This document shows, one piece after another, positions 5,501 through 33,147 of a DNA stretch of 64,000 nt. The position numbers were made by a program, and so were the translations under genes. A model generated the notes under the pieces. It was not told the DNA's origin and made no database searches. It worked only from the letters and a program-made list of their open reading frames with translations. Position 1 is the stretch's first letter; every line of letters starts with the position of its first letter. The DNA lies in assembly GCA_973895155.1 (NCBI GenBank), contig OZ316898.1, positions 12,365,659 through 12,429,658 on the forward strand. Reading direction: 5' to 3'. The stretch is from Marsupella aquatica. Lineage: Eukaryota; Plantae; Marchantiophyta.

Positions 5501-5710
5501 CCACACGACCACCATGACTAGGGAGGGTAAGAGTCCACTGTGGAAAAAGCATCAGTAAAGATCAGTAGGAGACCTCCATAGGATGCGCCAAGATAAGCTG
5601 CATGAGTTGTAACAAGGAGGACCGAACTATAGAGCGCAGCGCCAGAGAAATGTGGTTATAAAGGCGAAGTCTAATGTACCCTGGATGGTAGGCTGGAAGG
5701 GGGGGGGGGG
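2545..5710 (-). mobile_element. 5'-truncated RLE-type non-LTR retrotransposon (CRE-like clade)
   Basis: RT ORF followed by a CCHC finger and a restriction-like endonuclease, then a T-rich 3' UTR. The 5' end lies at a poly-C run (G run 5699-5710 on +). Boundaries approximate. Confidence 0.85.
2808..5552 (-). CDS. Reverse transcriptase + CCHC zinc knuckle + RLE (PD-D/ExK) endonuclease of a CRE-like LINE, 914 aa; probably N-terminally truncated
   Basis: Motifs RPIAIGE, VDVSNAFNTVSR, GTRQGDPLGGP, LSDD (YxDD position), GGFGL, CTCG...HLLQC, HDAVRD, RVDL...ADVVV...KEAKY...FLPLAVELFG. The frame continues upstream of the ATG through a TGA near 5562. Confidence 0.9.
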   Translation of the reverse strand: MLFPQWTLTLPSHGGRVGHRETASRIHRFLRGDWEQLQEEYFLRARSFTARALSDPARHSHPPEHRRLRRSCCLAQAGEYRRAVQALSPTTPAPPGEVTSLALQDLHPQPHDQLPLFVEDFEPEEDLQFSRDHFTYAFLHAPRCSAGGPSGYVFEHFHDLFPPEDPQFGFPVFFSFCQCIAAGRLPPPVSRLLSASHLLAMAKSSPGVRPIAIGEVFLCLVSRTLSSQFRSALSDHLSPHQFAVGVPGGCETVIAGIRATLDLHPDWVVLQVDVSNAFNTVSRAAIFCALRAADPDIQSLIPFVRCFYGLEAPLFYSHHSSTGVYTTLSSAEGTRQGDPLGGPLFAIAHFTALREVAMAHPQCIFPSLSDDTHIIGPPAVVTSALATLSTHLMGLGLRVQPVKSRAWSPAGLPSDLVLPPGFLRPADGLRVLGSPVGTASFCSSFIADSIQAALAHTPMLPKLADSQAAFGMLLRCIHPRASYLARTHPPTEDLCLHLRAFDVSIRQTLASLLGPGTLLSSPWLHRQLSLPISQGGFGLTSIESLAPLAFLGAWAAAFSLLADRFLIEDRPFLLSSLMEVEEGSLPFQVHLRAARSSLPDPVRAALPSFQEFLSLDPVRLQADLAGRMHTFTLSSILSEAPDTDRAWILSSGGKGAGGWLKANPVIPHLRMSSTEFSTAMRLRLGLPHPLLAGLPPSCTCGKPCDAIGVHLLQCSLGGETIIVHDAVRDATAQVLSGSLVCVRREVVLELPGPPSQRLRVDLTMVREGQRTLADVVVANPLRQDIIGTAATTVGAAASRAATMKEAKYAARASSDSFLPLAVELFGRLPPQFDGLLWQAARDVHGRMGPTGPPLSILTTHFCQCISVTLQRAQARAIYRRSLTVGASVPPQRLAPLEDVPIPLADLVLTLDVDH

Positions 5711-8142: not shown

Positions 8143-9603
8143 ATGCTGCAGGCGAGAGTGGCGGTCCCCATGGGCTCCTCCCCATGGAGCGAGCAAAGTG
8201 GTCAGCAATCTGAGCAGAGAGAGCTGAGGACGGTCGCATTGACCTTTCCTGCTGACCACTTTGATCGTGATCAGCAGAAGCAGACCATCATCGGAGCCCC
8301 CGGGACCAAGGCTTCATGTGAGAATTTGGACGAGCAGCTGTGGCAAACACTGCCCGAAGATGTACTGCCGAAGATCTTCGCAAGGCTTCCTTTTCGCTCC
8401 CTTTTCAAGATCCGCCTTCTTTCCAAAGCATGGGTGGCGTATATGGAGTCCCCTGCTTTTCAATTGGAAGCAACGTCCCAAGTCTTGTCCACTTGGGAAT
8501 CCTTTTCCCCGCTCTTCTGCGCCAGCTGTGAGCAGGATATGAGAATGGTCGCTTACTCCAGTACCTCTCGGCGATTGGAGAGGTTGTTCTCGTTGTCCTA
8601 TCTTTTCGAGGAAGGTCGATCCTCTTCCTTTCGCTGGCAACTGCGGAGCATCGCTGGAGCTCTACTGTGCCTGAAACAAGTTGGACAGCCAGGGGAACGA
8701 GGATTACTGGTGACCAATCCAGTGCTTAAATCGTGGAGAATACTCCCGCCACACGGATGGATGACCCCGTTTCTACCGGCCTACGAGATCATTCATCTAA
8801 TTAATTCGGAAGCGGAGGAGGATGCATCAGCTTACAAGGTCATCTCTATTTCTCAAGACAGTGGCATTCGAGACCCACACAAGAAAATTCCTTCACAGGT
8901 ACTTCCTCAAGATTTACTGTTCCCGCTGGCTCATCTACGTGCAGAGATCTATGACTCCGCCACAGGAGCTTGGACAGTGGACGAGAGTGGCCCAGTCATG
9001 CCTATGGACCTGCACAACGTGAGCAGCGTCTACGTAGATGGAGTCGTGTACTTTTCGCTGGCGAGCAGCAGATATGAGTCGTTCCACTTGTTGGCTTACA
9101 ATGTGATGAGCGGACGTTGGACCGCAATTCCTTGTCCTCCTGAGTCCTCCTCCAGCCTGGTGCAGTTGACGAGGTGCGGCTGCAGTGTGATGCTGGTACT
9201 CTCTGCTCCTGCTGCTCCTGATCGCAAATCCAAATTCGGCCCGTCAACTGATGACTTGAAGGTTTCTGAGGGCAGCATCAAAGTCTACGAGATTGGTCCA
9301 GACCTTCAGATCACTCTGGTATCTGGAGGCCCCACTGAAAGCATCCAGGGAGTGAAGATAGTGGAAGGTGTCTCCGGAGATGAAGACTCCATTTACTTCC
9401 AAGCTTTCGGACGGCCCCTTGTAGTCGTGTTCAATGTGAAACAGAAACTGTGGAGAACTATGGCTGTCCGGCTGGATTCCAGCAATGTCACGGATGATGA
9501 TTCGGGGAAACTTCTGAAAATGTCTTCTCGTTATATTGGGCACTGTTTCAATTGGACGAATTCTACCTTCCAGCCTGGTTCGAGTTCCTTCGGGGCCCCT
9601 TAG
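8143..9603 (+). CDS. Intronless F-box protein with a C-terminal kelch/FBA-like beta-propeller, 486 aa
   Basis: F-box motif LWQTLPEDVLPKIFARLPFRSLFKIRLLSKAW. Typical associated motifs GALLCL, LLVTNPVLKSWRILPP, AEIYDSATGAW, VYVDGVVYF, LAYNVMSGRW. Confidence 0.92.
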   Translation: MLQARVAVPMGSSPWSEQSGQQSEQRELRTVALTFPADHFDRDQQKQTIIGAPGTKASCENLDEQLWQTLPEDVLPKIFARLPFRSLFKIRLLSKAWVAYMESPAFQLEATSQVLSTWESFSPLFCASCEQDMRMVAYSSTSRRLERLFSLSYLFEEGRSSSFRWQLRSIAGALLCLKQVGQPGERGLLVTNPVLKSWRILPPHGWMTPFLPAYEIIHLINSEAEEDASAYKVISISQDSGIRDPHKKIPSQVLPQDLLFPLAHLRAEIYDSATGAWTVDESGPVMPMDLHNVSSVYVDGVVYFSLASSRYESFHLLAYNVMSGRWTAIPCPPESSSSLVQLTRCGCSVMLVLSAPAAPDRKSKFGPSTDDLKVSEGSIKVYEIGPDLQITLVSGGPTESIQGVKIVEGVSGDEDSIYFQAFGRPLVVVFNVKQKLWRTMAVRLDSSNVTDDDSGKLLKMSSRYIGHCFNWTNSTFQPGSSSFGAP

Positions 9604-13700: not shown

Positions 13701-15072
13701 TGAGAGTGCGTTTTGCTCTTCTTACCCGGGCCTCTAATTAATTTATGAGTCCAGCTGAGTTTTTCTTTTTCAACACTTGGCTTTACTTAAAACACTCCTG
13801 GGAAAATATCTACTGTATAGTTTGTTCGTGAGGTAATTTCCTTTCCCCATCCAGTCATACTTAGAACCAGAAGACACTTTCCCAATATCGGTGTAGAGTA
13901 GAAGTACGTGGGTGGGTACATAGCTAACATGCAGACTACTACTTTCACTCAAAATTTAAAGTCATCAAGAAGGTTTCGATGTTATTACCGACTTTTCTCA
14001 CAAACATTTCGCTCAATACTAGGTAATTTAGTTCTGGAACATTGGTTCAGGTCTGACTGTATAGCAGTTGCCACTCGTACCGTGTGGTATGAATTGTGTC
14101 CGTGAAAAAGTTCCATTTGTACTCCTAACAATTTCTTTCCTTCTTTCATTTCTCTACGCACTCTAGGCAGCTGATGGACCTTTGAGCGTCCACTTTCAAG
14201 CTATTTGAATCACAATTCAGGTCAATGTACATCGACGAGCACAACGCAGTACTCTGGTTTTAATATGCACATTTTGACGAACTCTTGTAAAGTACCAGTC
14301 ATGCACGGCACAACAAAGCTCACCTTGAGTTTGGTAGAGAATCCAGAGGCAGGGGAAGTAGTCGGTCGGAGTTGGACCAACTTGCCGCTGGCCTTCAAAC
14401 AAGCTGCAGCTGTTCCTTTGGCCGTCGACGATGACTGATCACAAAAGGCAACGTAGTGAGTTATTAAAGAAAGGTACCCATTTCGATTCCGAGTTTGACC
14501 GACGATTCTCATCCTCCGTGCTGAAATTTCATGTCTGAACATTAACAATTTTGCCTCTGATATCATTGCATTTGTTTCAAGAGGCATTAGAAAACTTCTT
14601 TCGGTTCCTTTTTGGAGATAGCCGATTCTGTACGTTTGATAACGAGAAGACTACGAAGGGCAAAGGGCTCACTCCAGATGGAACAGCACAATCCCCCAAA
14701 ATATGATTACAATAATGAGTTATAAACAGTAAATTTTCAACGATTAGAATAGAAATGAATACAGTAGTTTACAGGGAGCAAAGGGACCAACGAGGCAGGC
14801 CATGCAGTAGCTGCCTTTCCCGCCAGCCGACCAAGAAAACATTATCAAGGAAAAATGAATAGATTAGATACGAAGACCAGATATCAACGTAGATGAGGAG
14901 CAAACTTTCCATCTTTTTGAATTTTGCTTCATGTCGTGATGATTGTTTTGATTGTTTGGATTAGCCTCTCAGCTCGCCTCTCTACGAACTCGAGCAGGAG
15001 AAAAGAGCGATTCACCTGGTACGGTGTGTGGATCCCTGCAATGGCAGCAGGTGGGTGGTGGAGTGATGCCAT
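10782..15072 (-). CDS. DUF3445 / heme-dependent oxidative N-demethylase alpha-subunit-like protein, ~455 aa, spliced, with a probable organellar transit peptide
   Basis: Phase-consistent GT-AG exons: 15072-15016, 14434-14324, 14200-14162, 13431-13414, 13347-13140, 12788-12430, 12161-11946, 11599-11558, 11447-11326, 10977-10782. Motifs MTMG..P..PEDWIEID, LVQEDLCLM, LFPQRWSL.EKLG...IH.PVP.Y, VWRANW, RCERETL.RLPRTGAILFTIRTY. The small 5' exons are less certain. Confidence 0.85.
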
Positions 15073-16029
15073 CAAGAACACTGCCCTGCAAAAGCGTACC
15101 AATTGCGAATGAAACCGGCATCTCGGCAGTCAGATCAACACTCTTCATACTCTTGAGGCCAACAGTATCACAAATTATACAATTCCCGAGGGAAGTGAGG
15201 GGCTCACCCCTAATAAAAACGTTGTCCCCCCGTCCTTCCGCAGGGAGGAATCGCAGGGGTCAGGGGACGAAACCGGGCGGGATTCTTAATTGTAGTCCGT
15301 TGCTAGTAAGACCACGACCCGATTGCCGTAGAGACATGCAAGTGGACTGCAGGAGATATCATTGCATAAATTTTAGTACGTCGAACTCAAAGATCACTGA
15401 ATGCTCGAAAGGCCCGTGCACAGCCAGAGTGCTTGTAAAGCTCAGAATTCTAGGCATAGATTCGACAAATTCGACAAAACCCTCAAACATAGTGTAGTAG
15501 CGAACGAAACCGAGGTTGAGTGTGAGTAGATTGAGCTTGAGAAAATTATGCTTTGACGCTCATTGAAGTGTTAATTAATAGAGCTGTGCGGAGCTTCAAC
15601 CAGATTCCTCAACCTCCTTTTATGGTTGCAATTGCAAACAAATCCCTAGACGAATGAAACGAGGTCCTTCCAAAGAGTGAGTGAGAGAAGCAGAGAGCTC
15701 TTCTGTATGTCAATTACGTGCATACCTTGCTTCAACTGGAGCTTCTGCAATCAATTTGCTGCGCGACTAGAACAGAATCAATTTCAATTGATTCAATTGA
15801 AGGTCAATTGTGGAATCTCAATTGAAGGTCAAATGTGGGTGGGCGATGCAACGACAGAAAGAGGAAATTTCCTGGAATACTTCCGGAAAAGAAATTCAAA
15901 CGGTAGAAAACCAACCCACGTAAGACCATCTCCACCGGTTAGTGGGTTGGTATACTGTAAACTCTATGTTGACCAAACCCACTTTTTTGGCCTTTTGGTT
16001 GTCCTCCTTTTTGATTGTGTCTTTTGGTT

Positions 16030-16300: not shown

Positions 16301-16634
16301 CCACGTCTCCCAGTTGGGCGCCCTTTGTTTTTGGCAGTTTGCAATATGGACTAAGGTTCAACAAAAAAGGGGGTTATTCTAACGCTATTCATTCATGAAG
16401 GCTATTTATTTCTGACCTCATTGGGTTTTTTGGTTACTGGATATATGATATGAACTAGTCTATGGTGCATTGATTGAATACAGGATTCATTGGATCTGTA
16501 TAAGATATGAGCTACTCTATGGTGCATTGATTGAATACATGATTCATTTCAGGGTTCTCCAAGATCCAATGATTAGCATCCAAGGGTGCATATGTCAAGA
16601 GATACTACAAAATCCAGCAACCATTGGGTTTGCT

Positions 16635-19420
16635 TTTTTTTTTCTTTTTTTTTTGAAAAACACGAGCGCACTTTATTGAGAACAAACCCGTCTGAGGGGA
16701 GGAGACAGGAGAAAGGAACAAGGAACAAATAAGGGTTGCTGAAAGAGGGAGCACACCCAGAGAAACGAAGGCGAGACCACCCCAAACCGGCCGCCTAAGG
16801 GGAGGAGGCGGGCCATAGAGGAGAGGAGGGACCCAGAAAGCCAAACATAAGCCGAACCAACCAAGACCTGAATATGAAAAAGGAGCATCCAAAACAGCCA
16901 ACCTAGCCAGAACCACCAAAGCCCCAAGAGGCCCCCCGCTGAACTCCATCTGTCCTGGGCTGCCTTCGATGGCTATAGTCAACCACCACTTCCCCAGCTG
17001 CATCGAGGCCAGACCACTCCCTGAGATCACCACGCCCTCCATACGAGAGTCCACCTCAATCTCCGGACATTCCCTGGATCACCAAGAAGAGAGCCTTGAT
17101 GATTTCACCTTATTGTGCCCTGGCTATGTCCAGCGCGGGTACCCGAGGTTATGCCTCGAGATCCCGAAGCATAGCCCGGGGCAGAAACTAGCAGACCAAA
17201 GATTCCATCGTGCCTGATCTCCATTTTTATACCAATTTATGATCCTAGAACTTGAGTGTAGAACACCTCCCAAGGAAAGCAGCCATAGCTGATGCGACGG
17301 AGAAAAGAGATAGGCAACCAGTCCAGATGCCAATTAGCGACTTTAACTTGGCATTTAAACCTCCCACTCACCAATCATGGGCTCCATATGTAACAGCCAG
17401 CAGCCAGCCCAGTGGAGAGTGACAGAGAGAGCAGGGGACACACCTACAGCGCCAAGGTTAGAATCCAGCCGATTACCATGAGAGAAGCTCCCCAAGATAT
17501 CCGAGAATCCTGGGAATGGGACGGAACAAATGACGGCTACCACTAGAATTGTTAGCTGAGAGCCTACAGATCCTACCTATCCAACAATGTAGTACCATGA
17601 GTAGCCTACCTATCTGTCTTTGTCTAAGTCTGTCTGATTGCTACATTTGCAGCGGAAAAAAGTCTGTGCTTCTGAAAAGAGATAGATATGAAACCAGACT
17701 CGAATAGTCCGATGAGAATCTAGTTCTGAGAGAGCGGTGGTAAAAAAATGTCAATACTGGCCGCCAGTCATGGTGAACCAGGATCCCAGGACAGGGGGGG
17801 GCGGCAAAAAAGCCAGATGGCGGGACAGAGGAATATGTCTCCAAAAGGTGAGAAACCAAGCTACCATCTCCAATGGCGAGCGCCGGATGAGAGAGCCCCA
17901 CAAAGTAGCGAGAAGAAGCCATAAGGGACAGCAAGGGAAAGACCCACCAACCATTGGTACTTGTGGGGGGAGGAAGAGAGCAGCAAGGAGATCAATGGAA
18001 CGAGGGATGTACTGTGCCATATGGTGATGGGAGGAACAGACACCAGATGAGGATCGGAACTAGCCCATGATAGAACTGAAGGGATGGGGTAATCCAAGAA
18101 TAGGAGAAGAAGAGAACGTAACGGGAAGAAAGGAGGCTCTAGAACATATATTAATATAATAAGAAGTGAGCCGTGGGGAAAAGTATCCCAAACAGAAAGT
18201 CAACGAGGACAACGAGAGGTCAGAGGACCAGAGATATACTTCTCAACATAGTATAGACGATTTTTCTTTTTTTCTGAGTCTGAACAAAGAGCCACCGAAC
18301 GAAGATGCTGAACGACAGATGATGCGGCCAGAAAGGGGGAGAAGACTACAATTTGGCTCTGAAACAACCGAGAGTTTCTATTTTTCCATAGGAGCCACAC
18401 AGTTTCATAGATAACAAAAATATGAGCAGATAGCCGTGGGGTACGACCAAGGGCAAGGTCCAATGTGCTTGTGAAAGAATGTCCCCCTGGAAGAAGGGAG
18501 AGAGACGGCACCCGCTCATAGAACCAGGCAGTCCGGTTCCAAGCACAAATAGCTTGCCTGCAGGAGAAGAAAATATGAGGATTATCCTCCACCCGATCCG
18601 GGCAGGATGGACACGTCCCATCTCCATGTCCACACTGCTTAGCTCGTTTTCCTGAAAATAATCCTGCAGCCAGGACCCGCCATAAAAAGATTTTACCACG
18701 ATTAGACAGATCTGATCGCCAGATCCTCCTCCACCTGCGCCCCCAATCTCCTGCAGAGTCTGACGTCCCCCATCGATTGTTAAGAGAGCCGATGTCTCCC
18801 CCAGCCTGGTGTAGGAAATTATAAGCTTGCATGCTGCTGAGGAAATGAGGTCTGTGATGATTTTGAAGGCCACACCAGAACCATTGGGATCCGGCGAAGG
18901 AAGAAGAAATGGAAGGTGGAGGGCCGCTATGAATAGACAAAATGATCCTAGATAGAGTGTATAACTCTATGACCCCAAACCCCCGCAGCCTGGAGAGACG
19001 AGGCAAAAAGTCCACCCAACAGCCCGGATCCTGCATCCAGAGGTCAGAGACATACCGAATATTTAGACGATAACAGGCGATGATAATCCTAGGAACCAAA
19101 GAGATAGGAAAGTCTGAGGAGGTGAAAATTTAGGAAGAAAGTCCGCGATCCTCCATCTTGCTGGAATGGCTTGTGAGCCATACTGCCAGTGCAAGTTGAT
19201 CCTGATCTTATTCCATGCCCTCCATATACCTGCCGTGTATACCATACCTCGAAAGCTGGATGGGGAGGAGAATAGGAACCGATCCATGGTGGTGTACCCT
19301 GCTTGGCGAAGCAACACCGTCTTTTTCCATGCTGCCAGGCGGAGATTGGCCGAGAATAATATCGCCCAGTCTGAATCCTGGTCTGATATCATCCGAATGG
19401 CCCATCTGGCCAGCAATGCC
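16635..19420 (-). mobile_element. 5'-truncated L1-clade LINE with a long 3' UTR
   Basis: Poly(A) tail (T run 16635-16654 on +) and 7-bp TSD GTTTGCT (16628-34, 19421-27). Contains frameshifted ORF2 C-terminal pieces. Confidence 0.85.
18200..19416 (-). pseudogene. L1 ORF2 C-terminal remnant (post-RT region and zf-RVT), frameshifted near 19070-19100
   Basis: LLARWAIR...W; KIFLWRVLAAGL...CPSC...EDNPHIFFSC...W; WLLWKNRN..LF. Confidence 0.85.
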
Positions 19421-19739
19421 GTTTGCTGTTTGACATATCATCTTTGCTATACAAAGCAAAGACAACCCTTTATGCTATATTTAATGTATACAATAAGCAA
19501 ATAGCGTACACAGTTGGAGATGCTCTAACTAGAATGGACATCATCTTGAGAATCATCATCAATACAAATAGCTCAAAACATTCCTTTGAGGCTTATGAAG
19601 GATCATCATAATTGTGGTCCCATTTTCCAATTTTTGTCCCCTCACTTTTGGGAGAGGAGTGTAAGCCCAAGTGATTGAGTGCTCTATTTTCCCATTACAG
19701 TTTCAAACATCCACCCTAGATTTGAATCATGGCACTTGG

Positions 19740-20525
19740 TGTAGGATCAACATAGTCAGCACATGTGACGTTTCATAATCATCATCCATATAGCACTCGA
19801 GTACACCGATACAAAGATATGTGGTTCACCCCGTTAGGGCTACGTCCACGGCCGCACCAAGAGCTTCACTATGAACACCAAAAATACATATCACCATAAA
19901 TGATCCATGGTCCAAGCTCTCTCATTCTCACACAAAGTTCTCCACTAAGTGTTCTCTCTTCATGGGATACAAAGAAGGTTATCCCTTCATGAAGAATCTA
20001 GTCAACTAATGTTAACGTACTCCGGTTAACTTACTTTAGTTAACCTAGCCAAGGTTGAGTAAAAATGCGAACAAATTCCCACTTGACTCTAGCCTTGAGC
20101 TAGCTTCTAGCAATTTGAAGCTAAGATCTGTAGGGAATTGCAATGTCTTGCAAAATCACCATGAGGGATAACCTTGGTTAACATGTCAACTGGATTGAGT
20201 TTACCATCAATCTTGACTAGCTCAACCTTTCCAGTTGACACTGCCTGTTTGATGAAGTGAATACCGAATATTAATGTGTTTAACTCTGTCATGTGTCATT
20301 TGGTTGACAGTTATGTGTAAAGCACTATTGCTATCACAATGGACATTCAAAGTACAATGCGTTGTGTATTCTCCAAATCCTTCATCAGGTTGCTTAACCA
20401 AATTGTCTCCTTAGCTGCTTTAGTTGCTATCACATATTTAGCTTCAATAGAAGACTGATATATGCATTTATACTTTGTGGACCTCCAACTCACACATCCA
20501 CCTGCAAGAGCGAAAGTGTATCCTT
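19740..20525 (-). mobile_element. Ty1/Copia 3' remnant: degenerate RNase H, PPT and 3' LTR
   Basis: Minus-strand translation gives GYTFALAGGCVSWRST, HFIK...KIDGKLNPVDMLTK. PPT GAGTCAAGTGGGAATT at 20074-20089; LTR TG...CA at 19740-20073. Confidence 0.85.
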
Positions 20526-21435
20526 GTTAAAACCATAATTTTGTAAAGTAAACCACAAAGGGAAGTTAGTACACCAGATGTGCACATTGTTGAAATTGTT
20601 TTCTCTCATTCTCATGAGAGAAAAGAGAATTCACTAAGGAGTGATTCAAAATGAAAGATTAAACATTTATGAGGGGAGCCAAATTCATTCAAAATACTCT
20701 AACTTCATAAAAGTTCACTGAAATTTAAAGGGGTCCAGAAATTAATTCAAAATAAAATTAATACAAATGGTTCACCTTGTTAAGGGCATATTAAAATCAA
20801 AATACTGGACACAAAATCTGAAAGCTGGATTCAACATTATAGCAGCTTCATAATATCCTCCAATGATGGGACTCGGATTATAGAGTTGTTGCTCGGGGGT
20901 CTCACTTCGCGAAAATCTCATATCACGTGCGACTAAGTATAGGGTCCGTTAATTGGGTTTCTCGGAAGACTTAAGAAGATTTGTGTAAGAACAATAGGGT
21001 CAATTTTATATGTTGGACAACTTGTAAGAATAATAGGGATATTAATATTTTTGACTATGTAGATGGAAGACATACAAGGAAGTTAGGGGGTCTTTGTGTC
21101 GGACTATGTAAATTACACGTGTCACTATATCATTGGTACACATGGCACACATAACATTCTCAATATATTTTCCTAAGTCATGTTTATTTTAACATGGATT
21201 CTAATTTGAGAATGATTTAAGTGGGTCTGGTTTTTTGGGGACTCACGTTTAGGGTTTGAGTGGGATTAAGTTTGAAATTGTTCCGTTTAACATGTCTAGT
21301 TTCCCTCAATTGGCCGCCCTTGTTAGTCTCCTCCCGTGTCATTTCCCTCCAATATCCCTTTGGCCCCACCCGCTGTTTGGGATGAGAGACTCTTTTGTTT
21401 GTACCTTGCAGCAAATGGTGTAAACGGGGGTCTAA

Positions 21436-22340
21436 ACGAGTGTGCTGCTGCTTGGAGCAAAGAAGGATTGAGAGAGAGTGTTGTGACCTCGGATGCGAGT
21501 GAAGAAGGATCAAGCGAGAGTGTTGTGCTCTCGGCTGTGAGTGAAGAAGGATCGAGCGAGAGTGTTGTGGTCTCGCCTGCGCTGCTGCTACGGCTGCTTG
21601 GAGTGAAGGATCAAGCAACATTTATTGGCTGCACTGCTGCTTAGAGCGAAGGATCGAGCGAGAGTTGTTGGCTGCGCCTTGGAGTGAAGAGGAGAGCGAG
21701 AGTGTTGCGCTCTCGGCTGCGTTGCTGCTGTTGCTGCTTGAAGTGAAGGATCAACCCAGAGTTCTCGACTGCGCGCTGCTACTTGGGAGTGAAGGATCAA
21801 GGTCGTTCTTGGCTACGCTGCTGCTTAGAGTGAAGGGGAGAGCGAGACTTCTCAGCTGCACTGCTGCTTAGAGTGAAGGGGAGAGCGAGACTTCTCAGCT
21901 GCGCTGCTGCTTAGAGTAAAGGGGAGAGCGAGACTTCTCGGTTGCACTGCTGCTTGGAGTGAACCCGGGAATGAAGGATTAGGCGAGAGTGTTGCGCTGC
22001 AAGGTTGGAGTGTATAGGTGCGCTATTGTCTTGGTTGAGGGAGTGTGCTACGTTCCTGTTGCTGAAATGATAGGAAAGTTTATGTGACTGCTGTGTTGTT
22101 GCTCAAACAGGGAGTGCGGGCGGGAGTGTGGCTGTTGCAAGTGCTGTGTTGCAGCTGCTCAAACAAGAGGTGGGTGCCGGGAGTGTGGCGTTGCTGCTTG
22201 TTGAAACGGAAGCTGCTACCTTGCTGAAACGGGAGCTACTAGCTTGCTGAAACGGGAGCGAGAGTGTTGCATTGTTGCTTGCTCAAACAGGATTGCGAGG
22301 GCTACTGCCAGCATTGCTGTGTTGCTCAACCAGGAGGTGG
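21436..22340. repeat. Internal tandem array: 43-bp unit CTGCTGCTTAGAGTGAAGGGGAGAGCGAGACTTCTCAGCTGCA plus degenerate copies, then GTTGCTCAAACAGG-type repeats
   Basis: Near-perfect units start at 21818, 21861 and 21904; about a dozen looser copies flank them. Confidence 0.85.
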
Positions 22341-24542
22341 GCGCTTCCTGCTTTGACGATCGTGCTTGCTTGCTTGCTATTGTTTGACGCTCAATCATGC
22401 TTGCTTGCTACTGTTTGAAGCCCATATGTACCACGCATGGCACACCTTATCTGGTAGCGGTCGTAGCCGATGTGTTCCATAGACATTGCTTGCGCAAGTC
22501 ATATGCATTAGATTTGCCCATCGAGATTTGAAAGTAGTTAGACCGGGGAATTGTGTTTCATGTGAACTCATGAGTAGTTCTAGCATTTCTGTTTCACATG
22601 CACTGAAGGCCTTTCTTGTACTCTGTCACATCATGTCGATAGTTCAAAAGTTGCTTTCATTTCCAAGGATGCCTGGTAAAAAAACTACCTTTTACCTTCG
22701 TTCCTACGTTAAGATGCGTAGAAACTCTACTGTGCGACTTATGATTTGTAGGAGACGAATAAATCAGCTCTCTAGATACGGTGATCGGTGCCCTCTCGTT
22801 GTGTCCTGTCCTAGCATAGCTGTGTCCATTCGCTGCATACGGGTCGCGATCGTCATGGTTGTTGCTTCAGGATTTAGTTGAGCATTTGGAAGCTGTCTCT
22901 GTCTGTTCCCATGTTCTGATTCAATTATAATGACTAAAGTTTTTGCCGTTTCTCTTTGCAGCGCTTTACGAACAGGCTCTGAAGCACGAGAAGAGTTTGT
23001 ACATCACCTGGACAGGGGCTCTTGCCACGCTTTCCGGGGCGAAAACTGGCCGATCTCCGAAGGACAAACGTGTTGTCAAGGAAGACACTTCCAAGAATGA
23101 TTTGTGGTGGGGCAAGTAAGTGTAAATCCTCTATTTCCGTGAGTTGATTGCAAAAAAGGGATCCACACTTGAATATGTTGTAGCCCATTGATGCGCTCAT
23201 CTCTGTAGTGTCTTTGATGTAGTAAATTCTCTATTTGGTGGTCTGGTTCTTCTACCTCCTCATCTTCCTCCGCCTTTGCCTCTTCGCGCTCCTCGTCGTC
23301 ATTGGCGCTGCCTTGGTTACGGCCAACCGATCTCCACATCCTGTCACTCTCCCATCTCTTGCTACTTCTGCCCTGCACCAATCAAAATTTGCCACCAATC
23401 CCTCCACACGAACACAAACTCTTCACAGCAGCCTTCCCCAAAACCACAAACCTCATTGAATTCTCCCCAGATGACAAAACATACGCAGATGCTGCGACTG
23501 ATGAGCATCTGCTATTCCCAAAATTCCACTATTCCGTTACTGACTGGCTCCTGGAATTTGGACCAGCAACAAATTCAGCACACACGAAATCCTTTGCTGT
23601 CGAGAGGACACTCCAAACCTAACTCGCTTTTTATCGACTGCCTTACACGGCCTTTCCTACTTTTCTGCTCCTCTCCTCGCCTCTCCACACCTCTCTCTTC
23701 TCTGTGTCAACCTTATGATGCACCCCGACCACAAAATCCTTCACCAGCACACTTTTACTTCTTCTACAAGCCAACGACTTCTCCCACGCAACGCGTTTCC
23801 ACAATGCAGCAATTGAGGCTCTTGAGTCTGGAGTTCCCCCTTGTTCCTTCATTCCTTTCGTGGATTTTGCTGCGCAAACAGAAGCTTTGGCAGTGAAGAA
23901 CATATACCCAATTTTGCCACGTTTGCCTTTGAGCATGGATTTTGCTTTTGCACTGAATCTATGATTATCATGGCTCCCACGTCACTCACTCCCTCATCAG
24001 AGCACAAGTTTCAAAAACCTCAGATGCTTCATTCGTCTACTGATGAGTAAACATGTGTTACCAACAAATAGCATTTGCAGAGGAGTAATTGCTGTAGCTA
24101 TGACCCAGCCCAAGCTTCCTCCAATGGTCAGCCAGATTGGATGCTCTTCTATGGAACACAATCATAGTGAAACACTGCATAAATTAGACCAATGTGTAAT
24201 GTAGGAAGGACACCATAGCTATGAGAGGTCCATGATCCTATTCAGGTTAGCTATTCAGGTTAGCTATTCAGGTCTGTTGAGCCCAATTATTTGTTTATTG
24301 CTGTCGTAACATGCATCATGGCCAATTGGTTGTCTTCAGTGCTTGCAGCATTTGAAACTTATTGAACTGGTGGTTTTAATTTTGTTCACAGGTTGCAAAA
24401 GCAATCAGTGCTTGTAGCTGTGAGCACCAGCACTTGCGGTGAAGCAGTTTGCTAGAGCACATACTGTACCTAGTGAATTGTAAGTTGCCTGTCATTGCAC
24501 GTCTGATCGCCTGGCCATTCACCGAGTAAAAAAAATAGTGCC

Positions 24543-24941
24543 ATGGCTAAATTGGGCATTACATTAGAAGCGAATTATGAGAAGCTCCTTTTGCAGCATC
24601 CAGATGAATGCTGCTGGTGCGAATCTTGTGTGAAGTGCAGGGTTGGTGATGGCAATTTTGAATGGTTCCATTGCTTCTGCTTGAAAATGCGTGGAAGACT
24701 TGTTACTAGGACATACATGGGAAAGCATGGCAAAGTTGTCACACGTCGCTGGAGGTGCTCTTGTATAAGGCCAACCATTTGGCCTCAAAATGAGTGTCTT
24801 TTACGCAAGATTGTCATCCCGGACACGCTTGACATTGTAGTCCTAGATAGTATTCCACATATAACTGAGCTTGATATTGTAGCCCCAGATAGTATTCCAG
24901 GTCAAGCTAAGGTTACAGCCCATGGATGCTTGACATTGTAG
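24543..24941 (+). CDS. Small Cys/His-rich transposon cargo protein, 132 aa, function unknown
   Basis: ATG in good context (GCCATGG); CCWCESCVKC...HCFC...CSC; repeated LDIVVLDS/LDIVAPDS; splice-like sites upstream (acceptor ~24391). Confidence 0.5.
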   Translation: MAKLGITLEANYEKLLLQHPDECCWCESCVKCRVGDGNFEWFHCFCLKMRGRLVTRTYMGKHGKVVTRRWRCSCIRPTIWPQNECLLRKIVIPDTLDIVVLDSIPHITELDIVAPDSIPGQAKVTAHGCLTL

Positions 24942-25283
24942 TCCCTGATAGTACATGGATGCGTTGTTCATGACTTGAGGTCCGGGATGACTAGGCCTTT
25001 GTTTGCAAGGCTGCAATTGTACCATCCATGATATATGAGAATAATTTTCATTCCCATTATGTGGCAAAGTTTCGCAAGCTGGCATTGTATTTATGTATGT
25101 CTTGGTTGGTGGGTGTCCAGGCTGCACTGTGTAGTTGACTTCATCTGGGAGGGAGGTTTGCAGATCATTGGAGCAGGTTTGTAACTACTTCAAATGTGGA
25201 TTTCTCCAAGTTCTATGGATTGCCCAGTATCATACATGTCCCTCTCATATGTGATGTGCTTTGTGATGATTTCAGTTGTAACC

Positions 25284-25943
25284 ATGCCGACAAGGACTTC
25301 AAACATAAAGAAAGCAACACAGTCCTCTTTAGAAGAGGTATTGTGTATTCCCTTGTTCTCTGAGCAAGAGATTCTACAAACCAGCCCTCATGTTTGTGCA
25401 ATTTGTGAGCATGGTGGGAAGTTGGTAATTTGTGATGGGCCATGTCACAGGCAATTTCATTATGTGGTTGGAGATGAAGCCCCTAATGACTCTTGCCCCT
25501 GTGTAGTCCTTCCCCTCCATCATGGAGGGAAGCCATGGTTTTGCCCAAATTGTAACCAGGACCAGGCCATGTGTTATGGGTGCCGCACTGTGGGACCGTC
25601 ACCTACAATTGTGCGAAAATGCTCTGATCATTTTTGTGTACGATTTTATTGCTTTGGGTGTTTGGTAGCTGCTGCAAAGTCCTGCCCACTGCATACATGT
25701 GTGACATGTTATCAGAGTCTTGAGGGTCAGATGGTCAAGAACATGGTACAATGTTTACGATGTCCAAATGCCTGGCATACAGATTGTCTCCAAATGATCA
25801 AAAGCAAAGGGTTTGCTCATGATAGGGACATCTGGGAACATGAAGCACATGGACAACAGCGACAGATGTTTTATTGCCCCTGTCATCCTATTGATCCACA
25901 CCTGAAGACTCCAATCAGGGACCACATTTCATGGCTCCAGTGA
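25284..25943 (+). CDS. Stand-alone EDM2-like composite PHD-finger protein, ~219 aa (ORF open from 25194)
   Basis: CAICEHGGKLVICDGPCHRQFH...WFCPNC, CYGC...C...C.RFY, CPLHTCVTC...CLRCPNAWHTDCL, and C-terminal YCPCHPIDPHLKTPIRDH. This matches the recalled EDM2 PHD cassette end (YC.EHEID..L.TPVRDH). ACCATG start just after a TTTCAG acceptor at 25275. Confidence 0.85.
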   Translation: MPTRTSNIKKATQSSLEEVLCIPLFSEQEILQTSPHVCAICEHGGKLVICDGPCHRQFHYVVGDEAPNDSCPCVVLPLHHGGKPWFCPNCNQDQAMCYGCRTVGPSPTIVRKCSDHFCVRFYCFGCLVAAAKSCPLHTCVTCYQSLEGQMVKNMVQCLRCPNAWHTDCLQMIKSKGFAHDRDIWEHEAHGQQRQMFYCPCHPIDPHLKTPIRDHISWLQ

Positions 25944-26442
25944 TCTGAATAATGAACAAACCTATTACTTAGGTTTCAACGTCTTAGTGGGGTATGAGCA
26001 AGGCATATACTTAAGCTGCATCATGGGTGGTAGTACCCAATTTTATTAGTGTTGACATTTTGTCATAATTACGGTCACTAATAGTGCTGCATTTTGATGA
26101 GCAAAAGCACTAAACCTCGGGAATTGTTAGAAAACTAGGCAAAAAGGATATTTTTTCTAAAGATATTTTATCCAACTTTAACGGTATATCATGATTTTCA
26201 CTGAATACATTTGCATGTATGATGGATTGCATTATAAAGTGTTTTGGCCTATTAGCACTTCTATTGTTAAATGTATGCTGACATTATGTACATTACTGAC
26301 ATGAGAATGTGTATGTTGTCATTGCATCTCTTGAAGATCCTAATGTGTTTCCCTTGTGTGTATTTCAAATGTATTTGTGCAGGTCTTTCTGTTATCGACT
26401 CCAAAAGCAATGGTGCTATGCATGTTCTAGATTTGTATTGCA

Positions 26443-29400
26443 ATGGCAGCCCCTAAACCCAACTCTGTTAAATTAATATGCAAAGTTGGGGATGACAAGG
26501 CTGATTTACCAATCTGTGTTTTGTCATTCAAAGAAGGACACACCCTACATGATTTTAGGGCTCGTATTGCCTCTACTCTAGACTTTGACTTCGATTTTTG
26601 GGATGAGAGACTTCCTGGTCGAGTGAAACTTGTACATGAGAAATTAATTGATCTGTCTGAGCTGGATGGAAGAGTTATTGTTGTACAACAAGAACTTGGA
26701 GATGGTGGGAGGATCCCACCAGTACCCTGTCATCCTTGCACTCCTGCATCATTGGGTCCAAATATTGAGACACCACAACTGAGGCCAACAGCACTAGCAC
26801 CCTCCCCTGTAAGGGCTTCTTTTGAGTCACAATTGATGAGAGATGTCCCATCAAAGCTATGGAAAGATGAGTGGATGAGGTTAGAGAAATGGGTACATAA
26901 GAAGGGTTATGGTGATCACAATTGGAGAATTCGTACCTGGGATGAGGGGACAGATGTTCGAGGGCATCTGGAGTGTCTTGAATGTAGGGAAACTTATGGC
27001 AATGCAGACAACTCTCAGAACCCTAAATCCATCTCCAATTGCTTTAGTAATTTTAAGACCAAACACTTGGTCTTCAATAAGCACAAGGATAACTATTGTC
27101 GGAGAAGGGGCATTCCTTCTACTTTGGTTCAGGTAGCAGACATCTCTGAGAAGCCAGAATATGATCATGCAGACGCCATCAAAGTAGGTGTTGAGATAGT
27201 TCAGCGATTGAATGCTGAGCTTGGGGATGATGGCAAACTATTCTCTATTGTTCCTGATCCCAGTACTCCTGAGTATGTAAACAGGTCTTTCCTGTTTAAG
27301 GTTCGCTGTACTGTCTGTGGAATGCTTCACACTGACTTGTGCCCCAAGAAGCTTACCTTGGAGCCCAATTTGAGGACACACTTAGTGAGTCGAGATCACT
27401 TGGATGCATTGGAGACTAGGCATGACACAAAAATGCTTGCCTTGAGGTCTGGGAAGAGGGGCAGGCCAAAGAGGACTGATTCTAGGGACCTACATCCTGG
27501 TCAGAGCGGGATTTTGAAGTTCTTTAAAGATGATGGGTCCCGGACAGGCAGCAGTTCAGGTTCAGGTTCAGGTGTGTGTGAATTTGTTGATCTTGGTCTG
27601 AGTTTGCTTTGCTGGGGATTATGGGTAGAGAGAGGTGTGCCTCGACTGTTATGGAAGGGTATATCTTATGATATTTCTGGCATTTTAGATGATCAGTCTG
27701 GGGGAATTACATGGCATTGTGAGCCAAGTTGTTGCTTGGATGTTTTCCATCCAAGTAGAGAGAGTGTTGTGAGTATAGCAGGCTGTTTTAGACACAAGGA
27801 TTGCTTGAGGTTATCACAGAATGGAGGAGGATTTGAAAATCTAACTTGTAGTGAATGTGATTCTATAACACTAGAAGATGATTTTCGTGGACGGGTGCAC
27901 AGGGAAGCGGAAGCAGTAGTCCACAGAGGGAGCCGAACCACTGCTGGTGGTATACGTTTGGATTATTTGACCAACACAGAGTTAAGAGATCAAGTGCACA
28001 ACCTGAACTCTGTGCGACGAAAAGAGCGTTGGTTGTTAGCTTTACAGGCTCAGAAAGTATGTGCCTTGAGCACCAGGAAACGAAAACTAGAGGAGTTGTT
28101 AGGAGTTGCAGCAGACAGGAAGGATTTGAGATTGTTTCTTAGGAGTATTTTGAATGGACACAGGAATGGTGCATTTGGTGGTAAGGAGGGTTTGTGGGAT
28201 TTCTTGAAGGATGTAGCTCACAATTTAGGCAGGAAGCCAAAAGGTAATCGTTACAGTAATAGGACTCGAGCTATTGCTCAGGCTATGTTCCAATTTGGGG
28301 GCCGTCAAGTTGCTCATTGTTTTGCACGAAACTTGACAGCCCCTAGCCTTGTGACCCTAAAACGTGATAGAGCAAAACTCACACCTTTTCGAACCGGGTT
28401 ACGGAAGGAAACCTTTCAGGAGATTGCTAGAGTGTTGTCTGCTGCAAAGCACTCATTGGGCATTGAGGGGGATGTGCCTGTTATCTTTGCTGAGGATGAA
28501 ACAAGGATCAAAGAACGCCCTAGGTAATTGGAACTGGACATTTTTCCAATTGTTTTTTTAATGACTTTACAAGTAGCACTTGGCTGGAATTGCTGTGATA
28601 TTGAAAAATTGCATGTCTGTGTTTCAGGTGGGAGGCAAAGTATGATACTCTCATTGGTTTCTGTGGACCTTCAGAGCAGCATGTATGCTCCTATGGTTTG
28701 GAAATTCTAGTTGGTGAAGGTGATGAGGGGTATGATAAAATTGTAAGTACATTTGAACAATGCCCCAAGTGCATGTATGCCCGAGTTGTGATTGTGAATC
28801 CTCTGCATGAGTCCTTACCTAAATTGGCTGTGTGTGCACTTCCAACTTGTAATAAGTTCACAGCTTCTTGGGTACGAGAGCATTGGGTCCAGTTAAAGGC
28901 TTTTTGGGATGAATATTGTAGAGCTATGGTAGGCCCTTTGCTTGGACATGCTAGTGATGGTGATGCACGTCGCCGAAAGCTGATGCTGGAAGATTACAGA
29001 GGGCAGAATGGATCATACCCAAGGTACGGAGTTGGGTGGGAAGGGTGGACATACTCTGTTTCAATTCTACCAAATGGAGATTTGTATGGCTTTGGTGACC
29101 AAGACCAACCTCATAATGGGAAAAAGATGATAAACCCCTTAGACAGAGTGTCTTCTTTACTGGTGCTAGGAGATCAACATGCATCTTTATCTTATGTAGC
29201 TAATGTCTACAATCATTATCCAATTCATGAACATGGCATGGCTTGGGCTCGGGGGTTTCACTTCCACAAAAATGGCACATCACGTGCGACGAAGTATAGG
29301 GTTGATTTATTGGTTTGAAGGGAAGACTTAAGAATTTTTGTAGAAGAACAATAGGGTCCTTTAAATTCAATTTTGAGACTTATAAGAACATTAGGGTCTT

Positions 29401-31333
29401 TTTAACCAAAATTTTGGAATATTCCAAGAATATTCAGAATATTCCAACTTTATAGGGGTTGAAAAATTAAAAAAAATTCTTATATTTTAGGGGGTCTGAG
29501 GCCTAAAAACGTCGCAGGGGATGGGGAGACATCCATATAGTGAGACCCCTGAGGGCTTGGGATGATGTGAATAGGACTGACCGGCAGAATTGGGCAGGTC
29601 CACAACGAATAGCAGCAAGAAGAGTGCAGCAATGTCTGAAAGATATGTATGAGAGGAGAGATGTACAACATGAACGAAGTTTAGGAACTCAGTTGTACTT
29701 GGAGATTTGTGCAGATTACTTAGATATTTTCTTTTCTCCAGTTCATGATTTGAGGTCCCGTATTGTGTTAGCATCCAAGGTTTCATTCTTTCTACGTTTG
29801 TGGAGATTGTGGTTGAGGTTTGGTGACCATTCAGTGGGTGGGAACTTTGCAGCACACACTGAGAAAGACATGATGTCTATTCAGGCTTTTCATGATGTTA
29901 ACATGTCATGTCATTTCATTGTGCTGTTAATTTGTGCCTTTCGAGATAAGTTCCCACATCTAGGTGTTCCCTTCCACTTGCTAGGTTCAGATTGTTGTGA
30001 GATTTTCTTCAGCAAGGTAGGAGGCATGAGTGGCCATGAGCGGAATTATGATTTTGGCTCTCTGTTGGATAGTGCTGTTGGACTGAACCGGCTTGCTGCC
30101 CTAGAATATGGACCAGAAGGCTTGAAGATAGGTCGTTCACATAAGAAACAAGATCATGTATGGGGGAAGATTCATCCTATAGGGGAAGGGGAGGAAGCAC
30201 CAAATCTACTTGACTATTCTCTCATTGAGACTAATGAATTAGTGGTTGCAGCCCTTAAAGAAGGTTTTGTTGCTGCTAAGGATCTTATGCATCAATTGCA
30301 GATGTCTCCACGAAGTTCCTTACCAGCAGCTAGAAAGAGATGGTGGACATGTCCTTGGGTTGTGGAAAGTGAGACCTGGCCACTAGAGGTGGTTCTGAAG
30401 GAAGCAATTGTTTGCAATGATTCTGAGGAGCAAGTAGAGCACCAACCACCAGACATAGGTCCTCGCCCAACTGGAGATTTTCATGAATTGGAAGATCCTG
30501 AGGATGATCTGAATAGAATAGATGCATGGTTAACAGAACCAGATCCCATTGTTGTTCCTGAGATGCATTCAGATGATGTACACAGAGATGATATACAGTT
30601 TGATGTAGACCCCTCAGATGAGCTTGAGACATTAGGTCATGAAGTTCGGCATGTGTTTGGATCAGTTGTCCATGCTGTAACTAATGTACAGAATCGTACC
30701 AAGGTAGTGCCTACTGTTACTTATGAAGGCAAGGTGATTTACAAATCCACTCTGGTAAGCCAGTTGGTAGGAAATCCGCATTTGTCAAAAGATAGGCTGA
30801 CAAGGGTGAAACAAGTGCTATACTATAGTACTGGCAAGAGAAAAGTGCAAGAAGTCAATCCTAACTCATGTTTTGTTGATGTTGGCACTGATTGTGCAAT
30901 TGCATTTGAGTCTGATGATAGTCCTGCTCCAAGTACTAGATCTGGAAAAAGAAAGGGAGGAAAGAATAAGGTTGTGGTGGAGGCAATCTCAGCAGGTAAG
31001 AAATATTTTTGGTTGGGTCGGATTGTCCAAATGAGACAGAAGTATGGCAGTAGGTGGGGCAATTGTCGGTCACCAATTGATTTGATGGATAGGCCAAATC
31101 CACTTGCAGGGCAATCAGGTAACATTTGTGAACTGTTGTTAAATTGGTATAGTCCTATTGGTAAGAGCAAAAGTGAATTCAGATATGATACCACTGATTT
31201 GAAATGGATGGATATTGAAATGGTCATTGCTAGTGTTAGTTTAACCATGAAAGAAGGGGTTATGGATCGTATCTATGTGTTGGATCCAATAGATAGACGT
31301 GCTTTGGATCAGTATCTTCAAACAATGGTATGA
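26443..31333 (+). CDS. P-element-like DDE transposase, ~1490 aa after splicing and MITE removal; currently interrupted by a MITE
   Basis: Exon 26443-28523, GT-AG intron 28524-28627, exon 28628-29247, then 29562-31333. Motifs APSLVTL, FAEDETRIK...WEAKYDTLIGFC, GHASDGD, DQPHNGKK (DxxH), DRQN, SDCCEIFFS. No other stops or frameshifts. Confidence 0.85.
29248..29553 (+). mobile_element. 306-bp MITE of the same family, nested in the transposase gene
   Basis: Ends CTCGGGGGTTTCAC...GTGAGACCCCTGAG; 8-bp TSD GGCTTGGG (29240-47, 29554-61). Both subterminal regions are homologous to the ends of 20892-31939. Confidence 0.93.
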
Positions 31334-31419
31334 ATATCATGTTACTGTTTAGTTTTTGAGAGTCTGTATATATGTTTTATTTTGTTAATATTAGTGGGTG
31401 TAGTGGGATAGGATAGGGG

Positions 31420-31479
31420 GTGACGGATTGGCAACTTGAGATCCTTTCTCAATTAGGGGTTCAATTCCCCTCCGTCACA
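31420..31479 (+). ncRNA. Compact tRNA-like (mascRNA/t-element-like) structure
   Basis: 7-bp acceptor stem GTGACGG/CCGTCAC; reduced D loop ATTGGCAAC; 6-bp stem TTGAGA/TCTCAA with a 5-nt loop; T arm AGGGG-TTCAATT-CCCCT; discriminator A. Confidence 0.6.
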
Positions 31480-31556
31480 TGTTACATCCCTCAACATAAG
31501 TTTTAAATGGAGTATGGATGGAGCATGGGATTGGTGATCAATGGGTGGAATGGATT

Positions 31557-31639
31557 ATTTATGTTGTGACCTTAAAGGCCATCCCACTTATGCACGTAAG
31601 GTTTATATTGGGATGACCTTTTAGGTACACAATATAAAT
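31557..31639. other. Imperfect ~30-bp hairpin in the transposon 3' region
   Basis: ATTTATGTTGTGACCTTAAAGGCCATCCCA pairs with TGGGATGACCTTTTAGGTACACAATATAAAT (one G:U, one bulge, two mismatches). Confidence 0.7.
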
Positions 31640-33147
31640 GATGCATTGAAATGATCAAAGTTTAAGGTTGACAAAGGTGCAAGAACTGTTGCAGGGCGTG
31701 CAATGTCTGACATACGACTTCACAAGGTACTGACATAGACTTATCTTTTCTTTCTAGGCATTTTATATTGATATGTGACACTTTACTTCACAAATTATAG
31801 GGGCAATACAATTTGGATTTTAGACTCTTAGAAGAAAGAAAGAGGGAGGAAAAAAAAATTCAACTTAATAAGTATGGGGGTCTAGGCATGAAAACGTCGC
31901 AGGTGATGGGGGGGTCCTCCATATAGTGAGACCCCCGAGAGTTGTTGTCACTTCATTCATGAATTTGCACCTTTTGTGCTGAATATCAATAGTTACAGTT
32001 TGGGGTTCAACTCCAACAGAATGCCCAACTAATTATGTTAAAGTGATGTTCTGTTCAAGTTCTTATAAGGAGAAAAAAATTCCAATTTTTGAACAAAGCG
32101 CAATGGCATTGTGGTTAGGGGAAGACCTACAGCAATGCAAGAGGGGAAGTGTATATTTTAAGATTTTCTCTTTTTGGCGAGAGAGGGAAGTGTTACCCAA
32201 TGTGGAGGAAAAGATGCTAAGAATATTAAGTATCTAGCTTTCTTTGATAAATTTCTGACCTTTACATCTCCCTAGATTTAAGAATACTTATTGTCAAATA
32301 CTGGTAAATGGGGTCTGCGGCTAGCTGGGAAATTGGCTTATCAAAGACCTTGCCACTTTGGACAAAAGTGTCCATTCAATTATACTTTTAGTTGGGTGGA
32401 ATTGTGCAAATTTTTGCACGTCTAAAAATTTTCTGGAGAGGAGTTTTCCATGAAGTTTGATTTTCTCAGAATTTAAAGAGTTCAAGGTTCAAAGAAAATG
32501 ATGCTCCCATCGACCAAGTGAATCATGCAACTCCGAGTGACACTCTTCTTGTTCTCAAATGAACAGTTTTCAGGAGCAAACTTTGACCTTCAACACCTCC
32601 TGTGATGTTCAGTGGGGTTGGTTCATCTTGGGCTATTTAGATGTGTCTTGGAAATATAGTTCCACCTTATTTAATACCTCTAGTTTTCATGAAGAATTGA
32701 GAGAGTTATGAATTTCTAGCATTACTCCAATCACTCAATGAATGTACACACTTTGCACTTCTGAAATTTTTGAGTAGCTAACTTTGACATTCAGTATCCC
32801 CTAAAAATACAATGAATCTATTTTTTCTGGGTTAGTTAGTAACTGCTTTGAATAATCTTTCCATTGAGCCTTATGTAGTAGTATTTCATTCAGAATGTAG
32901 AGACCTACACATTCTCAAAGATGACCATTTTGCTTTCTTGCCAGGTACAGTTTATCTGTGTAATATCTACTACATGAGAAACTAGGGTCTTGTTGCCGTC
33001 TATCTGGGTTGCAAATGTACTTCTGAGCATGTTGGCAAAGATGGAGGTCTTTCCAGGCTTCAATCTGGGTTTTAGATTTCTGATGAATAACCCTTTTTAC
33101 TTACATGAAAACTTGGGAAATAGAATGAGAAAATCTCCGTTTACATT

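Follow-up and report, generated by a model that had tools for sequence, protein, structure and literature searches.

The window analysed here is a 64,000-nucleotide stretch of the genome of the liverwort Marsupella aquatica (assembly GCA_973895155.1, contig OZ316898.1, positions 12,365,659 to 12,429,658 of the forward strand). It harbors a DNA transposon of ~11 kb (20892-31939; positions are those of the window unless another locus is named), which is bounded by terminal inverted repeats (TIRs) and flanked by target-site duplications (TSDs). The element carries a gene for a PHD-finger protein and a large transposase gene, the latter interrupted by a nested miniature inverted-repeat transposable element (MITE). 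Very probably, the 11-kb element is one copy of a family of cut-and-paste liverwort transposons whose transposase is related, at a great distance, to the P-element/THAP9 enzymes. The features of the locus, from left to right, are as follows (HTH, helix-turn-helix).

20884-20891, no strand: left copy of the 8-bp TSD, AGTTGTTG, identical to 31940-31947
20892-20906, plus strand: left TIR, 15 bp, CTCGGGGGTCTCACT, an exact match to the reverse complement of the right TIR
20928-20933, plus strand: TGCGAC subterminal box of the left end (+37 to +42)
20939-21038, plus strand: ATAGGG boxes of the left end, at +48, +103 and +142
21460-21963, no strand: subterminal tandem repeats with 42-43-bp periods
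25284-25943, plus strand: accessory gene in one intact exon, whose product is a stand-alone PHD-finger protein of 219 aa with an NSD/EDM2-type PHD cassette
26443-28523, plus strand: transposase exon 1, residues 1-693 and two bases of the split codon 694
26968-27087 and 27304-27402, plus strand: two CxxC..H..H fingers, recognised by residue pattern only and given no support by Pfam models
27451-27468, plus strand: AT-hook GRP, nearly invariant in an alignment of ten N-terminal homologues
28150-28362, plus strand: HTH-like region carrying the PSxxTL motif
28495-28497, plus strand: first catalytic Asp, D685, in the motif AEDET of exon 1
28524-28627, plus strand: intron, 104 bp, GT..AG
28628-29247, plus strand: first part of transposase exon 2 (whole exon 28628-31333)
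28956-28958, plus strand: second catalytic Asp, D804, in the motif SDGD, first part of exon 2
from 29097, plus strand: DQDxxHNGKK motif, first part of exon 2
29240-29247 and 29554-29561: 8-bp TSD of the MITE, GGCTTGGG, a direct repeat on either side of it
29248-29553, plus strand: nested MITE, 306 bp, with the TIRs of its own family, each with one mismatch to those of the large element
29562-31333, plus strand: second part of exon 2, to the stop codon
29999-30001, plus strand: catalytic Glu, E1047, in the motif SDCCE (D-x-x-E), second part of exon 2
30701-31330, plus strand: C-terminal β-barrel domain of the transposase, 210 residues of the window's own protein, modelled with a pLDDT of 80.9
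31896-31901, minus strand: TGCGAC subterminal box of the right end
31925-31939, minus strand: right TIR, 15 bp, the exact reverse complement of CTCGGGGGTCTCACT, at which the contig depth of public runs drops
31940-31947, no strand: right copy of the 8-bp TSD, AGTTGTTG, identical to the left copy

Perfect 15-bp TIRs and a perfect 8-bp TSD had been claimed in a preliminary description of this DNA, and both are borne out: the two TIRs are exact reverse complements, and the same octamer stands on both sides of the element. Perfect 8-bp TSDs are present at three independent insertions, those of the large element (AGTTGTTG), of the nested MITE (GGCTTGGG) and of a 9178-bp element in Riccia sorocarpa (GATGTCTT). 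The Riccia sorocarpa element (locus L001, 8695-17872) has the sequence CTCGGGGATGTCACT at both ends, with two mismatches to the TIR of the window. It thus joins the MITE as a further TIR-bounded copy with a different 8-bp TSD, for which a check had been proposed. In Calypogeia fissa, a degraded copy (L009) ends on the right with the window's exact 15-bp TIR, and its transposase is just 55-75% identical; its left end was not found and no TSD is readable. The TIR/TSD structure cannot be attributed to chance, as the MITE, the Riccia element and the Calypogeia copy all carry this TIR or one close to it. At another Riccia locus (L008) the TIR search showed only the left-end-like CTCGGGGGGGTTACT, and at loci L002-L004, L006 and L010, which come from ENA, Logan and Tara, it found no ends. 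Further along L009, at 19584-19738, another left end of this family starts 3.2 kb downstream of the right end of the first copy; its 15-bp TIR is identical, and it is 72% identical to the left part of the window MITE.

The left and right ends of the element are unlike each other. A TGCGAC-type box (TGCGAA in Riccia) lies ~37-45 bp inward in all six ends compared, and these boxes may be transposase-binding sites. The hexamer ATAGGG, whose mean density is 0.31 per kb over both strands of the window, occupies positions at +48 and +103 that are common to the window element, the MITE and, within 2 bp, the Riccia element. Outside the two genes, the remaining 4.4 kb of the 5' end contains the subterminal tandem repeats with 42-43-bp periods, and no coding sequence is recognisable there. 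Subterminal sequence is common to the MITE and the large element over more than 100 bp on the left and ~60 bp on the right.

The transposase gene comprises three long plus-strand open reading frames (ORFs) in three frames, whose coding pieces total 4470 nt. This corresponds to 1490 codons with a single 104-bp intron, in agreement with the ORF of ~1490 residues and one intron described previously. The spliced junction (...ERPR/WEAKYD..., the slash marking the splice point) aligns with the homologues without a gap, and an intron is present at the equivalent site in four relatives, namely the Logan contigs L006 and L007 and the Riccia and Calypogeia copies; it is absent in L002 and L004. The ENA contig L004 (699-5177) has ~1492 codons in one continuous frame without an intron, with a single in-frame stop at 2577-2579. 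A second intron in the window gene was considered for the other coding gap and ruled out, this gap being the MITE with the TIRs of the family and its own TSD. Removal of the MITE together with one TSD copy yields an uninterrupted frame, and all homologues read across that point. As the MITE sits in exon 2, the window copy is unable to make a full-length enzyme.

Alignment of ten N-terminal homologues revealed a common domain order, which runs from a conserved N-terminal module through the two fingers, the AT-hook, a Cys-rich segment and a probable coiled coil in exon 1 to the HTH-like region. The motifs APSLVTL, AEDET, SDGD, DQDxxHNGKK and SDCCEIFF were all located in the window transposase, so the P-like motif series reported earlier is indeed present. 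Conservation across 64 sequences extends to the motifs EDET, SDGD, H..K and GSDxCE, and all of these but EDET are nearly invariant. Judged by this conservation, D685, D804 and E1047 form an Asp-Asp-Glu (DDE) triad as in the P superfamily, with spacings of 119 and 243 residues, compared to 73 and 228 in P. The catalytic triad of P transposase is D230/D303/E531, and D528, which neighbors E531, contacts guanosine triphosphate (GTP) (PMC7776569). The D-x-x-E of SDCCE would correspond to D528/E531 of P, as a parallel at the level of motifs and not as a superposition of residues.

For structural comparison, we modelled a 40%-identical homologue, P0004 (865 aa), which possesses all three catalytic motifs, using the 64-sequence alignment. 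Its coding contig, L004, matches each of the three pieces of the window gene in collinear order at 32-47% identity, and the model reached a high confidence, with a pLDDT of 84.6 and a pTM of 0.85. Structural similarity search using Foldseek gave as top match the strand-transfer complex of the Drosophila P-element transposase (PDB 6P5A, chain A; 6p5a_A), with an E-value of 3.1e-9, a probability of 1.0 and a target TM of 0.63, followed by RAG1 (E 3e-3) and Hermes (E 1e-2). Superposition with VIA-align onto the same chain gave a Z of 25.0 and a root-mean-square deviation (RMSD) of 3.5 Å over 374 residues (model residues 1-470, chain residues 168-569, which are 402 residues). The next matches reached Z values of 10.3 (Transib), 9.7 (RAG1) and 8.3 (Hermes of the hAT superfamily, with an RMSD of 8.1 Å). 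The HTH and the first strands of the model align to P transposase from P residue 168 onwards. When the domain order of P transposase (PMC7776569) is mapped onto the aligned range, this range should span the HTH, both halves of RNase H and the whole helical insertion domain. At the level of the predicted fold, P0004 has the core of the P superfamily, an HTH and an RNase H domain split between β5 and α4 by an all-helical insertion domain, which in P binds GTP. The ESM Atlas points the same way independently, as a lead: the nearest named clusters shown were nearly all TNP-like (PF21787/88/89 or PF12017), with a top score of 0.94. The TSDs of the three insertions also have the length typical of P elements, 7-8 and rarely 9 bp.

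Upstream of the transposase, the ORF 25194-25943 matches the NSD-type PHD models PF23004 (E 1.1e-7) and PF23011 (E 2.4e-5) of Pfam. Its gene is taken to be 25284-25943, encoding 219 aa, because the starts of six homologues (213-304 aa) coincide with the internal ATG at 25284; every Cys and His of the protein is kept in these six. The degraded Calypogeia copy also has a PHD-like ORF (35% identity, E 3e-14) upstream of its transposase and in the same orientation, at a distance of 1490 bp compared to 1471 bp in the window. A second, conserved gene is thus present in what had been described as a multi-gene element. The PHD gene is absent from the Riccia elements L001 and L008, and a metagenome contig (L005) holds a 47%-identical PHD homologue with no adjoining transposase. 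The Riccia element L001 has a different second gene, downstream of its transposase (13764-15946), whose 593-aa product gave only weak coiled-coil-type Pfam matches (best E 0.002, below the cut-off); this element also lacks residues 183-642 of window exon 1.

The C-terminal β-barrel of the transposase gave, in a wide VIA-align search, BAH1 of DNMT1 (Z 6.9), EBS (Z 6.8) and ORC1 (Z 6.5), and 18 of the 24 top rows were BAH, chromo-barrel or Tudor readers. Foldseek gave no match to the barrel below E 0.1, and the nearest named clusters of the ESM Atlas were DUF7869 only (scores 0.84-0.88). The modelled barrel is thus weakly BAH/Tudor/chromo-barrel-like, with Z values at noise level.

The homologues of the transposase are annotated as 'hypothetical proteins' in Riccia sorocarpa, R. 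fluitans and Calypogeia fissa, and one relative in R. fluitans bears the UniProt name of a C2H2-type domain protein; further homologues lie on Logan, ENA and JGI contigs. A profile built from 15 sequences retrieved 3116 clusters (50% identity) at E <= 1e-3 among 1.84 billion representatives. Short metagenome contigs with ORFs of 1000-1150 aa are frequent among the matches listed, and one match comes from Tara Oceans. In a marine relative on a Tara Oceans scaffold (L003, 4606-7977, protein P0060), Pfam supports a PTM/DIR17-type Tudor domain at the C-terminus (E 1e-9), in the place that the barrel takes in the window protein. At L002, a DUF7869 (PF25273) gene at 16371-18233 lies 3.5 kb downstream of a P-like transposase; the Atlas clusters nearest to the window's barrel carry DUF7869 too, which is no more than a lead.

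The abundance of the family was assessed in public sequencing runs. The stretch is present, at least in part, in eight runs with five coded organism labels, and ~40% or more of its words occur in six of them, with three labels; four runs were mapped on window 26400-32399. Single element contigs in run X1 have depths of 453-526, compared to 19.9 for the contig of the right junction and flank (~25x), and those in X3 have depths of ~1500-2160, compared to 36.6 for the flank (about 40-60x), all of these being rough Logan contig depths that are not to be read as copy numbers. The summed depth of the MITE exceeds that of the element more than 100-fold and that of the flank thousands of times, and dozens of dissimilar flanks meet positions 29248 and 29553. 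In X2, X3 and X6, a MITE-free joint that skips exactly 314 bp (8 ambiguous bases) is about as deep as the other element contigs. From these data, full-length copies of the element appear to number in the tens, with this MITE lacking in most, and the MITE family in the thousands, in at least three run-labelled organisms. The family looks young, abundant and recently active; its youth had already been proposed, and the depths of element and MITE speak for it.

Compared to P, THAP9 and Pdre, the element shares the 8-bp TSD and short TIRs, its 15 bp comparing to 13 bp in zebrafish Pdre and 31 bp in P (PMC7776569, PMC3698922). Like P, it has internal subterminal sites that differ between the ends and associated MITEs, as with BuT5. 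The proteins both comprise a zinc module, a coiled coil, an HTH, an RNase H domain split by a helical insertion domain and a C-terminal domain, with a DDE triad whose third residue lies in a D-x-x-E motif; P transposase is also the best fold match. However, THAP is replaced here by CxxC..H..H fingers and an AT-hook, and the protein is invisible to the Pfam models of the P family. It has 1490 aa compared to 751, and the element is 11 kb long compared to 2.9 kb. In addition, the termini starting with CTC, the BAH-like barrel, the separate PHD gene and the land-plant host set it apart from P. The hAT elements Hermes and Ac resemble it in the 8-bp TSD, in the shortness of the TIRs and in an RNase H fold that contains a helical insertion domain, but Hermes is the weaker fold match and the hAT C-terminal dimerisation domain is lacking here. 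A conserved second ORF, large size and subterminal repeats are also seen in multi-gene plant TIR elements with accessory proteins (mudrB of MuDR, TnpA of CACTA and the Myb-like ORF of PIF/Harbinger); the present element differs from these in the superfamily of its transposase and in having a PHD-finger cassette as accessory protein.

Several observations weigh against placing the transposase among the P-element relatives. The P family models PF21787/88/89 and PF12596 and the THAP model gave no match in the window pieces and 30-odd homologues at E <= 0.1-1. Pfam finds nothing in the coding pieces of the transposase, which were searched one by one (26443-28521, 28629-29246 and 29555-31330). In the ten N-terminal homologues, the Pfam models of THAP, BED and C2H2 had no match. 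The only P signal from Pfam is a sub-threshold match of PF12017 (P-element HTH, E 0.006), which immediately precedes the core of a distant relative, P0154. A sequence search of the PDB with single pieces and the profiles A3 and A4 gave no relevant match. The fold was modelled on a homologue rather than on the protein of the window, and the search output held no solved structure of Kolobok, MULE, CACTA or KDZ, so that P could be the nearest solved proxy. As for the GTP cofactor needed by P, the D-x-x-E motif is what the sequence shows, and the likeness of the barrel to chromatin readers stays at noise level. Moreover, no RNA run is among the public runs that hold the stretch, the intron being predicted from the DNA, and the depth figures are rough. 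THAP has been reported as confined to animals (PMC7776569). Since the Pfam sequence models and THAP both fail, strict membership of the P superfamily is not shown, and for the same reason we file the element as a deeply divergent P-like lineage. The P-like assignment made earlier is supported by fold and motifs, not by a Pfam P-family or THAP match at the sequence level.

The same failures could mean that the family ranks as a superfamily of its own, allied to P and outside the P/THAP9/Galileo clade, having kept an ancestral HTH, RNase H and insertion architecture and possessing distinct DNA-binding and C-terminal modules. The D1-D2 spacing of 119 residues, compared to 73 in P, would fit such a placement, as would the size of the clade, with its 3116 clusters and the ORFs of 1000-1150 aa common among the matches listed, no scanned member of which reaches the Pfam P threshold. 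However, the alignment to P with Z 25 over 374 residues takes in the whole insertion domain, an 8-bp TSD with short TIRs is typical of P (PMC7776569, PMC3698922), TNP-like families account for nearly all the named Atlas clusters that lie nearest, and one relative has the sub-threshold PF12017 match; on balance we regard a separate superfamily as unlikely. A hAT element would likewise have an 8-bp TSD and short TIRs, and the CxxC..H..H pattern of the fingers could be BED-like. The preliminary description had named hAT or another superfamily as a best structural match that would speak against P, yet P-element transposase came top by a wide margin (Z 25.0 compared to at most 10.3, and 8.3 with an RMSD of 8.1 Å for Hermes), and neither the dimerisation domain PF05699 nor BED nor any other Pfam hAT domain was found, which makes a hAT origin extremely improbable. 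Kolobok elements have a 4-bp TTAA TSD, and MULE/Mutator elements a 9-10-bp TSD, long TIRs and a MULE transposase domain. Thus hAT is excluded by the fold; Kolobok by the 8-bp TSDs, none of which contains TTAA; and MULE by the 8-bp TSD, the 15-bp TIR and the lack of any match to PF10551 or PF00872.

A domesticated, immobile host gene derived from a transposase could equally show long ORFs conserved across liverwort genera, but the TIRs, the TSDs, the nested MITE, the high contig depths and the degraded copies in relatives have already refuted this reading. The PHD gene may be a passive passenger, a captured host gene without a part in the biology of the element, considering that the Riccia elements L001 and L008 do without it, that the homologue on L005 has no transposase beside it, and that small stand-alone PHD proteins of the same type are a family of their own. 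Nevertheless, the ORF is intact with all its Cys and His conserved, and Calypogeia has a PHD-like ORF at nearly the same distance although the transposases are only 55-75% identical. The matching position in Calypogeia therefore points to an accessory gene retained by a sub-lineage rather than a one-off capture, and a passenger role, while a real possibility, is the less probable of the two.

With the element taken as a P-like cut-and-paste transposon, a mechanism of transposition can be proposed. The N-terminal fingers and the AT-hook would bind the subterminal boxes TGCGAC and ATAGGG, the HTH would bind the TIR, and a dimer would pair the two element ends. The DDE site would then cut both ends and join them to the target at points staggered by 8 bp, and GTP might serve as a cofactor, by analogy with P. 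The same enzyme would mobilise the MITEs in trans. More speculatively, the PHD gene, and possibly the BAH-like barrel, might link transposition to chromatin, through the choice of target or through escape from silencing.

P-type transposons are textbook elements of animals. A 2025 survey of 1007 plant genomes used Pfam profiles to detect 17 TIR superfamilies, P among them, and reported recently active autonomous elements in only seven superfamilies, to which P does not belong (PMC12973397). The escape of the present transposase from Pfam profiles would explain why surveys of plants miss this family. In the literature consulted we found no earlier description of P-like elements in liverworts, Repbase and Dfam being outside that search. 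Tentatively, and with the chances against it, the element could be the land-plant face of a very large P-fold clade that is invisible to Pfam, uses DNA-binding modules other than THAP and repeatedly acquires chromatin readers, its transposition being guided by histone marks or shielded from silencing. Repeated uptake of chromatin readers is suggested by the BAH-like barrel here, the Tudor domain of the marine relative and the PHD gene of Calypogeia-type elements; the clade itself is drawn from the 3116 clusters, which are mostly metagenomic among those looked at. The element widens the range and modular diversity of P-fold transposases, and its homologues indicate that environmental eukaryotes harbor a large clade that is still uncharted. 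For liverwort genetics the element may also serve as a native cut-and-paste system that appears to be live, and it allows the idea of a DNA transposon with putative chromatin-reader modules to be put to the test.

The neighborhood of the insertion is a mix of transposons and genes. ORFs at 2808-5552 (minus strand), 18200-19099 (minus strand) and 8143-9603 (plus strand) represent retroelements resembling long interspersed nuclear elements (RVT_1, zf-RVT) and a plant-type F-box/β-propeller gene. No RNA genes were found in window 20000-33000 by ARAGORN or at Rfam gathering thresholds. In run X3 (organism B), a 652-nt contig matches the right flank (31940-32399 region) only from 31960 on; its first 212 nt are unlike the element, and it may represent an empty or otherwise different allele of the insertion site.

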